Part shown: in pieces, positions 1 through 63,948 of the stretch
Position numbering within the stretch: position 1 is the first letter of the stretch
Layout of the letters: every line of letters starts with the position of its first letter
Source: Laetmonice hystrix
Lineage: Eukaryota
Direction of reading: 5' to 3'
DNA length: 64,000 nucleotides
Assembly (NCBI GenBank): GCA_965235115.1
Contig: OZ249451.1
Location: 1,798,001-1,862,000, forward strand
Translations under genes and position numbers: made by a program
Notes under the pieces: model-generated
What the model saw: the letters and a program-made list of their open reading frames with translations, nothing else
Told to the model about the DNA's origin: nothing
The model's database searches: none

Positions 1-3000
1 GCCAACCAGGAAGCCCGGGAGGAAGAGGTGAAGCAGGACCAAGAGGCGAAGCAGGACCACGTGGAGAGGCTGGCAGTCCAGGTGGAGCTGGGCCTGCAGG
101 ACCCGCTGGATCACCAGGCCAGCGTGGTGAGGCAGGACCTCAAGGAGCCCCAGGAAGTGCAGGGCAACCAGGCTCACAGGGACCGAGAGGAGAGTCAGGC
201 CCTGCTGGACCTGGAGGTGCGAGAGGTGAACCAGGCCAGAGAGGAGAAGCAGGGACACCTGGATCTGCAGGTCGACCTGGAGAGAGAGGACAGGCTGGAT
301 CACCTGGACCTGCAGGACAGGCTGGTTCACCCGGAACCCGAGGAGAGGCAGGCCCACGAGGTGAGCAAGGACCACGTGGGGAGGCAGGAACACCTGGATC
401 CCAAGGAACGCCTGGCCAAAGGGGAGAGGCAGGACCTGCAGGACAATCTGGTCCTGCAGGACCATCTGGCGCTCCTGGGCCAAGGGGAGAAGCAGGTGCT
501 CCTGGAGCACCTGGCCGTGGAGAACAAGGTCCACGTGGAGAAGCTGGAACACCTGGTACTCCAGGTAGACAGGGCGAAAGAGGAGCCGCCGGACCTGCTG
601 GTCCATCAGGACCACAAGGACCACAAGGTGGACGTGGTGAACCTGGTCAGCGAGGAGAAGCTGGACCAAGGGGAGAAGCAGGATCACCTGGTGGTGCTGG
701 TAAGTTGAAATGAATATTCTCCACGCTTTTTATGATTTTCTTTACTCGTAATTCGATTAAAATAAACGATACTTCTAAATTCTGTATAATTTTTTTATTT
801 TATTTATGACCACCATTTCTTGATGAAAAGTCATATAAATAATGTGGCATGAATGTGTAGGTCCGGCCGGCCCTCAGGGTCCACAAGGACAACGAGGAAC
901 ACCGGGCACTGACGGACAGCCAGGCTCAGATGGTCAGCCAGGATCACCTGGCGCACGAGGTGAACCTGGTGCAGCTGGAACACCAGGCGCCCGTGGAGAG
1001 CCAGGTCAGCGCGGCGAAGCAGGAACTCCAGGACAGGCTGGAAGGCCAGGAGAACGAGGAGAAGCTGGTCCACAGGGTGCAGCTGGTTCAGCAGGCCCAT
1101 CTGGCCCTGCCGGATCCCCTGGACAACGGGGTGAAGCTGGACCACGCGGAGAGCCCGGATCAGCTGGTGCACCTGGTAAGATTTGGAAAATTAACAGTTC
1201 ATGTCTTAGCTGAAAATAATTTAGGGACTCGATTGGTTCTGTTCAGACAATACAAGATTTTGTTTTACTGTCGTGAAGCTTATACATTAAACTTTTGACT
1301 GGGGTTTCCTGTTTCTTGTTTAATGTAAATAATTTTGTGAATGTGTTTCATTTTCAGGTCGCGATGGTCAGCCTGGAGCTGCTGGCCCACGTGGTGAGCC
1401 AGGAACAGATGGACAAGCAGGAAGTAGAGGAGAAGCAGGACCACGAGGTGAGGCAGGACCACAAGGGTCTCCTGGTCAACGTGGTGAAGCCGGTGCACCT
1501 GGATCACCTGGAAGCCGTGGAGAACCAGGCACTCCTGGATCAGATGGCTCCGCTGGACCAGCTGGACCAGCCGGTACTCGTGGAGAACCCGGACAACGTG
1601 GTGAAGCTGGACAACGTGGTGAACCTGGTGAGGCAGGTCGTCCTGGTACTGATGGCCGTCCGGGTGAGCGTGGCGAGGCTGGGCCTGCAGGTTCAGCTGG
1701 TCCAGCTGGACCCCGTGGAGAGGCTGGCCCAGCTGGAGCGCGAGGAGAGCCTGGTCAAGCAGGCGAAGCTGGATCTCCTGGACGAGATGGTAAGAAGCAG
1801 TCTTGTTTTCAATTTTACTTAATTGGAAGAATCATTATATTTCCTACTGATACGATTAAACCCTTTGCTGATCATAACAAATATTGCTTGAAAAGGATCA
1901 CCTGGAGCGCAAGGCCCCGCAGGACCACGAGGAGAACCTGGACTTGCTGGGCCCGCTGGTGCTGTAGGACCATCTGGACCTCGTGGCGAAGCTGGCACAG
2001 CTGGCAGAGATGGATCACCTGGTCAACGGGGTGAACGCGGTCAACGTGGTGAAGCTGGGCAGCCTGGATCTGCAGGACGACCAGGTGAGAGAGGTGAGGC
2101 TGGACCGGCCGGAGCAGCAGGAGAGCCTGGAAGAGCTGGTTCTCAAGGACCACAAGGAGCACGTGGTGAGCCAGGTCAGCGTGGAGAGGCTGGTGAACGT
2201 GGACAGGCAGGATCACCAGGATCACCAGGTAAGGGCTTCTAATTTGATTATTAACTTTTAGGAATTAAAGAAAATTTCATAGGTATACTTCAATGATTGC
2301 TAATCAATTATTCCTCTTCATAACTCACTTAACATTGCAATTACAGGTACCGCTGGTTCTCCTGGATCTCAGGGAGCCCGAGGTGAAACAGGATCGCAAG
2401 GACCACAGGGAGCACGAGGTGAAGGAGGAGCACGTGGTGAAGCTGGAACTCCAGGATCCCCAGGGCAGCGTGGTGAGCGAGGTGAACCAGGTGCTGCGGG
2501 ATCACCTGGAACAGCTGGCCGACCAGGAGCACGTGGAGAGCAAGGATCTCAAGGACTACAGGGAGAACGTGGCGAAGCTGGAACACCTGGCTCTGATGGC
2601 AGACCAGGAGAGAGAGGTCAACCAGGTGAACCTGGCCGAGCTGGTTCCCCAGGAGCAAGAGGTGAACCAGGCACGGACGGTCGCCCAGGTGAGCGTGGAG
2701 AACAAGGACAACGAGGAGAAGCCGGAGCACCTGGTTCACCTGGAAGGGCTGGAGAACGAGGGCAAGCAGGACCTGCTGGCCCCCAGGGAGCAAGAGGAGA
2801 GGCTGGCCCGCAAGGAGGCAGAGGTGAAGCCGGGCAAGCGGGATCAGCAGGTGAACGTGGCGAACCAGGAACAGATGGTCGACCAGGTACGTCATGGTTG
2901 AAATATTATTATCATTATTGGAGAGAGTGAGATACACGGGCCGATAATGACAGGTCCTGGGATGGGGATGAAACTTAAGGGGATTATCCAGATCTAAACT

Positions 3001-6000
3001 CCTTAAGATAAATAAAATTATTTTATTTTGTATGATACGCCTACCGCTTACCAGTTCAAATGGTTACTTTAAAATGCCTGTTCGAAATGATTTACTAATA
3101 CTTTTTAAATTTGTATTAATCAGGCTCCGCTGGAGCTCCTGGTCAACGTGGTGAACGTGGTGAGGCCGGACCAGCTGGCCAACCAGGATCAGCCGGACCA
3201 TCAGGACCTCAGGGCCAGAGAGGAGAGTCAGGAGCACCTGGCACCGCTGGTCAACGTGGAGAGGCAGGACAGCGTGGCGAGCCTGGTTCTGCTGGTTCAC
3301 CTGGCAGGCCCGGCGAAAGAGGACAGCCTGGCTCTGCTGGCCCAGCTGGACCACAGGGACCACAAGGATCAAGAGGAGAACGTGGTGAGGCAGGACCAAG
3401 AGGAGAGCAAGGCGCACGTGGAGAAGCAGGCACGCCAGGATCTGCAGGGACACCAGGATCAGCTGGCCCTGCTGGATCTCCAGGCCAACAGGGACAACGT
3501 GGAGAACGCGGAGAAGCTGGAGCAGCAGGAACCCCTGGACAACGCGGAGAGGCCGGTCAAAGAGGAGAGGCTGGAGCCCCTGGGTCCGCAGGAAGTCCAG
3601 GACAGAGAGGTGAAGCTGGTGCACCAGGATCCCAAGGACAACGCGGAGAAGCTGGTCCACAAGGTGGCCGTGGTGAAGCTGGACAGAGAGGTGAAGCTGG
3701 AACTCCAGGAAGAGCGGGTGAGCGTGGTGAGCCTGGAACACCAGGCCGCGATGGATCAGCTGGAAGGCCAGGGCCCCCAGGACCTGCCGGATCCCAAGGA
3801 CCTGCTGGAAGTCGGGGAGAACCAGGCACACCAGGTTCACAGGGAGCACGAGGAGAGAGGGGAGAACGTGGAGAACCTGGCACTGCTGGACGTCCTGGAG
3901 AACGTGGACAGGCCGGATCTCCTGGTTCACAGGGATCGCAGGGTCAACAAGGCGCTCGAGGAGAGCCTGGTACCCGTGGTCAATCTGGCGAACGGGGAGA
4001 GCCTGGAACTGCTGGATCACCAGGTAAGTTGCCCTATTTTCAAATCTTTTGCGGATCACATCATTTATGTTTATAAGTGTATAAATCTGAATGGATATTT
4101 CAGTATGTAATACTAAAATATATATTTTTCCTTATAGGATCTGCTGGACCTGCTGGACCACAGGGACCAAGAGGTGAAGTTGGTCCTCAAGGACCAGTAG
4201 GAGCTTCAGGAGCCAGAGGAGAACCAGGAGCAGCAGGATCACCAGGACGACCTGCAGAAAGGGGTGCACAAGGAGAACAAGGAGCAGCAGGCCCTGCTGG
4301 ACCAGCTGGAGCTCCAGGTCAAGCTGGAACCCCTGGACAACGTGGCGAACCCGGCACAGCTGGAAGTCCTGGTTCTCCTGGACCTCAAGGTCAACGTGGA
4401 GAACGTGGTCCTGATGGGCAGGCAGGAAGTGCAGGAACACCAGGTTCACAAGGTCAACGTGGTGAGAGAGGTGAAGCAGGTCCACAAGGTGCTAGAGGAG
4501 AGGCTGGAACTGCTGGAACACCTGGTAGCCGCGGCGAACCTGGTAAATATGCTATAAAATTTGTTGTTCTATAAAGTTTTAAGTAACAGGAGAAAATAAG
4601 AAAATCTAAGTGCATTGTGCCATAACAGTATACATACACTGTGTTTCAGTAAAAGCCTTTTGGAAAAATAGTTTGGATCTGCACCGCCTTACACTGTTGA
4701 TGAAACTGTAATATGTTTCTTTCAGGAACACCTGGATCACCTGGTCCTCAGGGAAGTCGAGGACTCCCAGGTAGCGCTGGACAGGCTGGAGCAGCTGGTC
4801 CTGCTGGAGAGCGGGGACAGCGTGGAGAACCAGGAGCGAGAGGAGAAGCCGGTGAAAGAGGTGGGCAAGGTGAGCGTGGTCAAGCAGGAACCCCTGGGTC
4901 CCCCGGACAGCAAGGACAACGAGGTGAGGCCGGGCCCCAGGGAGCTCGAGGCGAGGCAGGGCAGGCTGGATCTCCAGGAACTGCTGGAGCACCAGGAACA
5001 CGAGGTGAACGTGGTGAACCAGGAACACGTGGACAGGCTGGTACGCCTGGATCCCCTGGTCAACGTGGTGAACGAGGAGAAGCTGGACCACAAGGCTCTG
5101 CTGGAACACCTGGGTCTCAAGGACAACGTGGTGAAACGGGCGGTCGTGGAGAGGCTGGACCTCGTGGAGCACCAGGCCAACGAGGAGAACCAGGTTATTA
5201 TACTAATTGCAATTCATACCAGACATATGATTTTACGTTACGCTTAGAAAAGCAAAATGCCACTGAAACCTATTAACTAGACTTTGCACCCGAGTATTCT
5301 ATTTTCTTATTATCTAATACACAACGTTATGAACACATTAGTTTAGTGTGTGTTGCCCTCTTGCAAATCCATATAGTTAATATGGAGCGAAAGACCAGAT
5401 ATAGTATTTGTTATTTTCTGCAAATTCAAGGTACCGCTGGTACTCCTGGATCACCTGGACAGCGTGGTGAGCCTGGCTCAGCTGGAGCAGCAGGACCCGC
5501 TGGCCCATCTGGACCACAAGGACAAAGAGGCGAGGCTGGTACAGCTGGACAACGTGGCGAGCAGGGCGCAAGAGGTGAGGCTGGTGCACCTGGATCTGAC
5601 GGTCGCCCAGGAGAGAGAGGTGAGGCAGGTTCCCCAGGTAGCCCAGGACAACAGGGATCACCAGGTTCACAAGGTCAACGAGGAGAGGCCGGCCAAAGAG
5701 GAGAGGCTGGTCCAGCAGGTGAACCCGGAACACCAGGAACAGCAGGCAGACAAGGAGAGAGAGGTCTTCCTGGTCAACCAGGAACAGATGGACAACCAGG
5801 TGCTCGTGGTGAAGCTGGACCAGCTGGACCACAAGGTCAGAGAGGTGAACCTGGTACCCGTGGTGAGGCAGGCGCTCCTGGTACCCCAGGACGTGCTGGA
5901 GAACGTGGCCAACCAGGATCTGCAGGATCTCAAGGATCGCAGGGACGCCGAGGTGAACAGGGTGGACGTGGTGAGCAAGGAGCCCGTGGAGAACCAGGTT

Positions 6001-18000: not shown

Positions 18001-19345
18001 GCGGAGATGGAAATGCGGGACCACGTGGACCGACGGGAGCCACGGGACCGACAGGCCGCATGGGTAGGACCGGCGCCACTGGACCGGTTGGTCGTGACGG
18101 CCGCACTGGTGTCCGTGGTCCGACGGGAGTCATTGGCCCACGTGGTGCACGTGGACAGGCTGGTCTTGGTGCTCTTGGTAAGTCATCTATTTACCATTCT
18201 GTCTCTTGGATCTAACGAACTTCACTCAGAGGGGAGATGTCACAATTACATGATAGCAAGGTTTCCGCCAGAGGGTAAAATGGGTAAAATTCCGTACCCT
18301 AAAATTTTTCCAGGGTACGGATCCGTACCCTCAAAATCGTTGGTTAACCATTTTTCCATGAAGTGATAAAAAACATCCCCATGATGCCTTGATCAACTTG
18401 AAGGAATCAAATATAATGTTGTACAGTATAATGCAGTCTTTATTTGATTAATTCAGATACACCCCTCCTCTGGTCCGTACCCTAAATTTTTTTCTGGCGG
18501 AAACCCTGGACAGTCTAACTTGTCAACGGCAGTGGTGGTGGGGGGGGGGGGGGAAATGCCCTGAGATTTATTTTTTAATTCTGGTTGCGCTTCTGGTTCA
18601 TGGCTAATTAGGTCATCTGGCCAAATAAGAACCCGTTCTTTTTACGTCATGGGTTATTTAATTTTTAATTATACTCGCAAATATATTTCCCCAAAAAAAT
18701 GATTTTAAAAATTAATATTTGCCCTTTTTACAACGAATCTTTCGTCCTCTTTTTCTAGCTCTTGGACAGAAGATGGCGAAGGGAGAACAAGACGTTATGC
18801 GAGAGCAGAACATCTTGAAGAAGATGTCCGCTAAATCCAACACGTTCGCCGTGGGAATGGCAGCGTGGGCTGGTATCGTCACAATCGCCCTCATAGTCAT
18901 CGTGGCGATCGTCTACAGAAGAATCAAGTCGAATCGCCCAGGATCGTCGGCCGAGTCCGTGTATTCCGACGCAGAGTCAGGTTCCAACTCAGGTTCCTCC
19001 TTTGCCTACGACCGTTCCAGCGTTGTTGACATTGCGTCCAGTTGCGGGGATGGGGAGACGAACGACGGCTTCACAGAGGACCTACCTACAGCTCCGGTAG
19101 CCATGCCGGCCGAGGTCCGACAATTGGACAGCGAACTGAACGAGAAAACACTACGACACATTGCCGGACTCCACGAGGAGGGTGACGAGGACGACGACGA
19201 CGCCGCGTCTGTCGCCGACGTGCACGGTCAAGGTCAAAACAAGGGCGACGCCAACCACCTGACGACGTCCCGTCATCAGTTCCGCCATGCGCCTTTCAAA
19301 GGACTGCACGTGAACGAGAACCCAGGAGGGTCATCCTTCCTCTAA
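1..19345 (+). CDS. Gene A: giant membrane-anchored (type I) collagen, 5'-partial; 28 exons, about 4,770 aa in window, about 1,520 Gly-X-Y triplets + neck + TM + 142-aa cytoplasmic tail
   Basis: Hand-derived exons: <1-699, 861-1175, 1358-1789, 1896-2228, 2347-2886, 3124-4023, 4138-4542, 4726-5193, 5431-6015, 6140-6742, 6860-7318, 7579-8298, 8513-8889, 9115-9331, 9521-10573, 10692-11465, 11609-12058, 12190-12583, 12716-13032, 13162-13773, 13875-14477, 14720-15259, 15497-16657, 16758-16973, 17112-17327, 17718-17861, 17992-18177, 18759-19345 (TAA). All introns are GT-AG. 25 of 27 are phase 1 (all but the last split a Gly codon). Internal collagen exons are multiples of 9 nt, singly or as pairs around the phase-0/2 introns. 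The spliced frame is a Gly-X-Y repeat ([15 protein letters not shown]). Confidence 0.93.
17342..17661. repeat. Intronic minisatellite, 5 x 64 bp
   Basis: Unit agattatgtcacagtgtttaccaagaaaactccagacctacgtgttatcaactgaggatttata starts at 17342, 17406, 17470, 17534 and 17598. Copies are near identical. Confidence 0.95.
18257..18508. mobile_element. MITE-like element in the last intron of gene A
   Basis: 15-bp terminal inverted repeats caaggtttccgccag / ctggcggaaaccctg (14/15 match) and repeated internal ccgtaccct motifs in both orientations. No target-site duplication found. Confidence 0.55.
18759..19345 (+). CDS. Gene A terminal non-collagenous exon: neck, transmembrane helix, cytoplasmic tail ending ...GGSSFL
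   Basis: Acceptor ttttctag|CT at 18758/18759 joins in phase 1 to the exon ending ...GQAGLGAL-G|gtaagt (18177). It reads [58 protein letters not shown]..., the same frame as ORF 18719..19345. Confidence 0.9.
18845..18916 (+). other. Predicted transmembrane helix of collagen A ([24 protein letters not shown])
   Basis: 24 uncharged, mostly aliphatic residues followed directly by RRIK (positive-inside rule gives a cytoplasmic C-terminus). Confidence 0.88.

Positions 19346-25790: not shown

Positions 25791-63948
<38,158 letters not shown>

Follow-up and report, generated by a model that had tools for sequence, protein, structure and literature searches.

A single-residue interruption shared by two giant paralogous collagen chains of Laetmonice hystrix, probably ancient and commensurate

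We analysed a stretch of 64,000 nucleotides (nt) of Laetmonice hystrix DNA (NCBI GenBank assembly GCA_965235115.1, contig OZ249451.1, positions 1,798,001 to 1,862,000, forward strand), referred to below as the window, which holds two convergent, tail-to-tail genes that code almost wholly for Gly-X-Y repeats. Gene A lies on the forward (+) strand and gene B on the reverse (-) strand, and near the middle of each a triplet lacks one residue and the chain reads Gly-X-Gly; this break is the subject of the present study. Flanking sequence was added to the window (20 kb upstream and 10 kb downstream), and gene models were built by chaining exons through GT-AG introns, almost all of which are phase 1 and lie inside a Gly codon. 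Ambiguous junctions, where two acceptors lie 9 nt apart or a break is hidden by Gly-X-Y continuity, were settled by comparing A, B and the orthologues of a second species (species 2, introduced below). The predicted helices are 8,650 residues long in A and 8,636 in B, corresponding to 2.47 µm at the established rise of 0.286 nm per residue of the collagen triple helix.

Each gene ends in a predicted membrane anchor. The last exon of A (18719..19345, +) codes for a cytoplasmic tail with SFL at its end, preceded by a short neck and a single membrane-spanning helix, and the last exon of B (25791..26159, -) for a neck, a membrane-spanning helix and a shorter tail; no other locus of the 627-Mb genome was found to carry this anchor exon. 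The chains are almost devoid of Lys, Cys, Met, His, Tyr and Trp and have much Pro, Ala, Arg, Glu and Gln. From the length, the presence of two chains and the composition, we infer that A and B are candidate chains of a giant annelid-type cuticle collagen.

In chain A the break lies at 513-521 (+), where ggc cgt gga gives G-R-G in the context GAP-GR-GEQ, at about helix residue 4254 of 8650 and 4397 residues (1.26 µm) before the C-terminal helix end. In chain B it lies at 48532-48524 (-), where ggc att gga gives G-I-G in the context GEA-GI-GTR, at about residue 4252 of 8636 and 4385 residues before the helix end. Both sites have exactly one residue between two glycines within the Gly-X-Y repeat, which is the definition of a G1G interruption, with well over the four regular triplets that such a break requires on either side in the same open frame, and the repeat goes on across the introns. 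The exon of A that holds the break begins 332 nt before the window and occupies 1..699 (+) within it; with the upstream sequence fetched, its full length is 1032 nt, the same as that of the B exon (48346..49377, -), and each consists of 95 triplets, the short unit GR or GI, and 20 more triplets. A phase-1 intron follows at the position common to both genes (700..860, +, gtaagt...ag in A; 48244..48345, -, gtaaat...ag in B), splitting a Gly codon after its first base, and the next exons begin at 861 in A and at 48243 in B. A preliminary description made from the letters alone had reported the Gly-X-Gly at the same triplet in both chains, the one missing residue in each gene, the exactly 20 triplets before the shared intron (699/700; 48346/48345) and the 1032-nt exon of B, and all of these readings agree with ours.

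The break is one of several that the two chains have in common. Six breaks were found in A, namely Gly-to-Ser substitutions at helix residues 1240, 2092 and 3201, G-V-G at 2686, G-R-G at 4254 and Gly-to-Ala at 5192, and five in B, namely an extra residue (GEQ-P-GPA) at 328, G-I-G at 2684, Gly-to-Leu at 3199, G-I-G at 4252 and Gly-to-Ala at 5190. Four are shared, at a constant offset of 2 residues, and their spacings are therefore identical in the two chains: 515, 1053 and 938 residues. The first shared G1G break, called site 1 below, reads GAP-GV-GRP in A (5360-5352 nt before the window start, +) and GST-GI-GID in B (54692..54700, -), where it stands three triplets into a 510-nt exon, 1568 residues before the break at mid-helix (break no. 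2). The Leu of B (GET-LGR-GAQ; 52749..52751, -), 1053 residues before break no. 2, has its counterpart in a Ser of A (GAP-SQR-GEQ; about 3420 nt before the window start, +), and the Gly-to-Ala substitutions (GRP-AER-GAQ at 4254..4256, +, in A; GRD-AQR-GEQ at 43916..43918, -, in B) both follow break no. 2 by 938 residues. For six breaks in A and five in B over about 2,880 triplets, the chance that four or more would coincide is about 3e-11. The shared breaks were inherited from the common ancestor of A and B. Furthermore, 37 intron positions lie at identical distances from the G1G in the two genes, and 6,991 residues can be compared with no net insertion or deletion (indel). At X and Y positions A and B agree in only 25% of cases, against a random expectation of 18% from composition; agreement so near random indicates that the duplication is very old. 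Break no. 2 predates the A/B duplication.

Similar contexts recur at the substitution-type breaks: five of the six here (SER-GEA, STR-GER, SQR-GEQ, AER-GAQ, AQR-GEQ and ATR-GEQ are the contexts recorded, two of which lie 13 triplets past an exon start) share the pattern X-x-Arg-Gly-(Glu/Ala), as do all such breaks read in the other species apart from a widened one in species-2 B. The Leu break of B (LGR-GAQ) fits this pattern less well, with Gly before the Arg. When internal duplication was considered as the cause of the alike contexts, no long-range autocorrelation peak was found.

Orthologues were sought with the non-repetitive tail exon of A as the query, which yielded nine relatives, all ending in ...SFL, the closest with 72% identity by BLASTP and 75% in the alignment. 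One of these relatives lies on a 2.5-Mb ENA contig, along which the A and B orthologues of species 2 could be read, again in tail-to-tail order. Exon sizes are the same in both. Species-2 A has break no. 2 as GAP-GR-GEQ in an exon of 95 + 20 triplets, and its breaks, counted back from the helix end, stand at residues 6559, 5965, 5450, 4397 and 3459, with no difference from L. hystrix; species-2 B reads GSP-GPA-GV-GSR-GEP-GEA in the same 95 + 20 exon. The gap residue of break no. 2 is thus R in both A chains, I in B and V in species-2 B. In all four chains 1,568 residues separate site 1 from break no. 2, and the distance to the Ala site is likewise equal. The A chains of the two species agree at 54% of X and Y positions and the B chains at 37%, with no net indel over 6,559 residues of A and 4,384 of B. 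Identity at the third positions of Gly codons is 46.8%, where composition alone predicts 43.6%; with a match so near this expectation, the species must be deeply diverged, with synonymous sites saturated. The preliminary description had proposed orthologues as the place to look for the same Gly-X-Gly and its absence there as a refutation; the position is kept in both species-2 chains, and no orthologue was seen to lack it.

A third species is represented by a 27.7-kb JGI contig (3300009753, Ga0123360_1057123) with a single intronless, open collagen frame of at least 10 kb, closed off by the same three parts, neck, membrane helix and tail; the contig probably represents an A-type transcript of nearly full length. 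The last 11.8 kb of this contig was read, and the register is the same over the last 3,342 residues. The species also differ by gains or losses of introns that left the coding length unchanged: relative to species 2, a 16-triplet exon of B is split here into 11 + 5 triplets (27539-27959, -), and two A exons upstream of the window (40 + 28 triplets) correspond to one exon of species 2.

These comparisons leave little room for an artefact of assembly or sequencing, or for a lesion in a decaying gene, to which we assign almost no weight. The locus is repetitive and GC-rich, and in general error-prone, and nothing else was found that would favour such an origin. At the B site, reads of one sample were checked in four runs, three of DNA and one that contains a spliced contig. 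The contigs of the three DNA runs over 47300-49900, or over the part that holds the break, show 0 other letters and 0 gaps relative to B, and for this gene they thus give no sign of the assembly artefact that the preliminary description had named as a refutation; the reads may be the source of the assembly, in which case this agreement is not independent, and independence comes from species 2. The contig of the fourth run, 20,250 nt long, lies on 47495-48241, 48344-49376 and 49561-49815 of gene B, matches it, and skips between these pieces at CT..AC ends, that is GT..AG on the gene B strand; it is most likely a spliced, RNA-derived copy of gene B. Because this contig carries the 1032-nt exon with its G-I-G in one piece and has the downstream intron removed, the exon is a single one and the intron is used. 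For A, an identical 14-residue stretch occurs at the site in the independent assembly of species 2. The frames remain open over more than 8,600 codons, contrary to what a decaying gene would show, and the same break stands at the homologous triplet not only in the two paralogues but also in the two orthologues from species 2, which is deeply diverged. On this point we agree with the preliminary description, which had held that the break is no random lesion.

An interruption that has the same position and the same length in every chain type is called commensurate, a term of Bella's that PMC11923368 uses in this sense. The same position and the same length are found in the A and B chains of L. 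hystrix and again in those of species 2, and we consider it likely that the break is an ancient commensurate G1G interruption near the middle of the 2.47-µm helix of two paralogous, membrane-anchored chains. In the mechanism that we propose, A and B would fold into one trimer, A2B or AB2, and all three chains would lose one residue at the same level, allowing the one-residue stagger to continue on both sides of the gap. The chains would then stay in register across the break, as had been suggested at the outset, with every chain shortened by one residue at the same level.

Whether A and B belong to one molecule is central to this interpretation. If they formed separate homotrimers, the shared break would reflect common descent only and would be silent on the register between different chains. 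Two features are consistent with that arrangement: near the N terminus B has an additional residue and differs from A by one triplet, and the cytoplasmic tails are unequal in length. Our main argument for a single molecule is that neither paralogue has fixed a triplet indel along some 7,000 residues, despite near-random X and Y positions, although such indels would be harmless in homotrimers. The conserved linkage of the genes, tail to tail in two species, and a joint change of form at site 1 point the same way. In L. hystrix both chains have at site 1 a G1G followed by a normal triplet (G-V-G-R-P-G in A and G-I-G-I-D-G in B), whereas in species 2 both are of the G4G form, of equal length but with the middle glycine gone (G-R-D-V-T-G in A and G-Q-S-N-A-G in B). 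The one-residue shift has thus been kept and the sequence has not, and both chains changed form in the same lineage. This joint state is suggestive of coupled evolution between the breaks of partner chains, as a single pair of events rather than a statistical result. Taken together, these observations make separate homotrimers decidedly improbable; moreover, the cuticle collagen of Nereis reportedly contains two distinct chains, A and B (Kimura and Tanzer, 1977).

Several observations weigh against the reading that we favour. The extra residue of B (GEQ-P-GPA, a G3G form; window coordinates 68757-68761, -), about 328 residues into the helix, and the one triplet by which B is shorter than A at helix residues of about 1480-1600 mean that the helix is not strictly commensurate in its N-terminal third. 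The site was read through in one other species, and the read of species 3 ends 39 triplets short of the Gly-to-Ala site and does not extend to break no. 2. Finally, conservation around break no. 2 is only modestly raised when 30 residues on each side are taken, at the 93rd percentile in each chain, and the Arg-Gly-Glu found there is common in A anyway, at 18% of triplet boundaries.

On the C-terminal side, too, the indications of constraint over and above register are modest. There, the 30 residues that follow the break have an X/Y identity between the species of 0.70 in each chain, where the chain means are 0.54 (A) and 0.38 (B), and only 2.2% of B windows come up to this value. The conserved stretch is GEQ-GPR-GEA in A, in which Arg-Gly-Glu occurs twice, and G(T/S)R-GEP-GEA-GR in B; Arg-Gly-Glu thus stands at or just past the gap in both chains. 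This flank might serve as an ionic clamp or as a patch for recognition.

We propose that the gap would be kept mainly by lock-in: repair in a single gene would put that chain out of register, and changes in length would be selected against. Taken to its end, the same idea yields a relic with no role of its own, in which a deletion in a single ancestral gene was tolerated, duplicated and then retained by the purging of indels, any flexibility being incidental. The zero net indels in all three comparisons (A with species-2 A, B with species-2 B, and A with B) are in keeping with such a relic, as is the freedom of site 1 to pass between G1G and G4G with only the shift of minus one residue kept. 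So are the Gly-to-X breaks that a point mutation can revert, which come and go in single chains, as their variation at two sites tells. The Ser at 3201 is kept in both A chains, and its counterpart in B is Leu here and Gly in species 2; 2,115 residues before the helix end, species 2 and species 3 have a Gly-to-Ala break (GTP-AQR-GEQ in the latter) in a place where both chains of L. hystrix have Gly. Other observations speak against a relic. The Gly-to-Ala break after break no. 2 is kept in all four chains, though one base change would restore Gly, and in species-2 B it has widened to two Gly-less triplets (GRD-ALL-AEQ-GAQ), which suggests that local disruption at that level is tolerated or favoured. 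Break no. 2 itself keeps its G1G form in all four chains, and its flanks are conserved above average in both. We therefore regard a functionless relic as rather unlikely, while giving it appreciable weight.

The preliminary description had taken the site for a conserved hinge or cleavage site. That it is a conserved feature which preserves register stands; that conservation by itself shows a function does not, since the whole helix is frozen in length and a one-residue gap would persist anyway. We put a hinge function forward tentatively, at somewhat less than even weight.

Single-residue breaks modulate the flexibility, recognition and proteolysis of collagens. The kink expected in the preliminary description fits less well than a dynamic soft spot, given that three-chain breaks of collagen IV are very flexible and that a Gly-Pro-Gly peptide, whose crystal structure Bella and colleagues are said to have described in 2006, is reportedly straight, its hydrogen bonds being disturbed and its mobility high within a few residues only. 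In the commensurate break that we favour, regular hydrogen bonding would be lost locally, leaving a short, flexible and more accessible spot with no fixed bend. By this analysis a soft spot, without a fixed kink, is most likely to be expected 1.26 µm from the anchored end. In atomic force microscopy (AFM) of collagen IV, as given in a preprint (bioRxiv 10.1101/2020.09.27.315929), the persistence length is about 2 nm at three-chain interruptions, about 85 nm at one-chain interruptions and about 105 nm in the intact helix, the three-chain breaks in that comparison usually being longer than one residue.

The preliminary description had also considered a cleavage site, and a break at 49% of the helix length could indeed be imagined as a processing site that halves the 2.5-µm molecule into parts of about 1.25 µm. 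In work of Thiagarajan and colleagues from 2008, G1G and G4G breaks of collagen X are said to differ in their susceptibility to metalloproteinases, which we counted in favour of processing. However, no dibasic or other recognisable protease motif was seen at the break, A and B do not have the same gap residue (R as opposed to I or V), and the chance that one of six breaks would fall within 1% of the midpoint is about 0.1. Annelid cuticle collagens have reportedly been isolated as molecules of about 2.5 µm (Gaill and colleagues, 1995), which also speaks against halving. Cleavage at this site is, in our opinion, very improbable.

In kind, the break is an ordinary, known type of collagen feature, found here in a newly sequenced giant collagen. 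Like the G1G interruptions of collagens IV, VII, X and other non-fibrillar collagens, a class set out by Bella (2014) and the group of Brodsky, it is one residue short between glycines and the repeat resumes at once. Its gap residues (I, V and R) are hydrophobic or charged as they are there, those of site 1 being V and I; G1G gap residues are said to be mostly hydrophobic and less often charged, again according to Thiagarajan and colleagues in 2008. Unlike those known breaks, it has kept its exact distance in residues from the helix end although divergence has reached saturation. The partner chains of collagen IV alpha1/alpha2 heterotrimers also break at corresponding levels, but their breaks are often unequal in length and need loops, whereas the four shared breaks of A and B are equal; at site 1, moreover, both chains changed form together between species, another difference from collagen IV. 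The density differs as well, collagen IV having more than 20 breaks within its roughly 1,400 residues and the present molecule only four shared ones in about 8,650. Compared with fibrillar collagen, the molecule is about eight times longer and has a C-terminal membrane helix as an anchor.

Like A and B, the annelid cuticle collagens of Nereis, Arenicola and Alvinella have a very long helix, two different chains and one globular end, and contain little Lys, Cys, Met, His, Tyr and Trp; a review likewise ascribes to them a triple helix of great length and globular domains (PMC11766948, citing Gaill et al. 1995). A membrane anchor is not known from protein work on cuticle collagen, whereas here it is predicted from the gene. 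No gene-level description, full sequence or interruption map of a giant annelid cuticle collagen was found in the literature searched.

Protein collections proved to be a poor source of relatives. Aligned A and B exons, used as a profile against 1.84 billion representative proteins, retrieved no orthologues: every hit was a bacterial, viral or vertebrate collagen, and none of these has the Lys-free, Glu-, Arg- and Gln-rich composition. Word-indexed searches were made with the true frame of the B exon and with the +1 frame of the A exon; neither gave an orthologue within the 8,000 candidates taken, which low-complexity proteins had filled. Over such exons, most public gene calls are open reading frames in the +1 frame, often starting with GTG; because the calls use the wrong frame, the true collagen proteins are missing from the collections and searches in the real frame come back empty.

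Two further observations concern the 3' part of gene A. In all ten A-type tail sequences a conserved F-x-H-A-x-(F/Y)-x-G is followed by a terminal -SFL (19334-19342, +, in the window), an ending that resembles a C-terminal PDZ-binding one; the tail of B is much shorter. The last intron of A contains a repeat of about 250 nt (18254-18510) with at least 40 copies of 82-96% identity on many contigs, which is probably an element like a short interspersed nuclear element (SINE).

More speculatively, the break of one chain might constrain that of its partner, and the midpoint G1G with its Arg-Gly-Glu flank might be a built-in joint that bends the 2.5-µm anchored molecule, for example between crossed fibre layers of the cuticle; we think this extended proposal unlikely to hold as a whole. 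The breaks of collagens IV and VII are too dense to be studied one at a time, whereas here four three-chain breaks stand isolated, 150 to 300 nm apart, in 2.5 µm of otherwise perfect helix. With their positions fixed to the residue in two species, the mechanical effect of a single G1G would be directly measurable by AFM, and the two species, G1G in one and G4G in the other at site 1, would serve as a natural experiment in the matching of breaks between partner chains.

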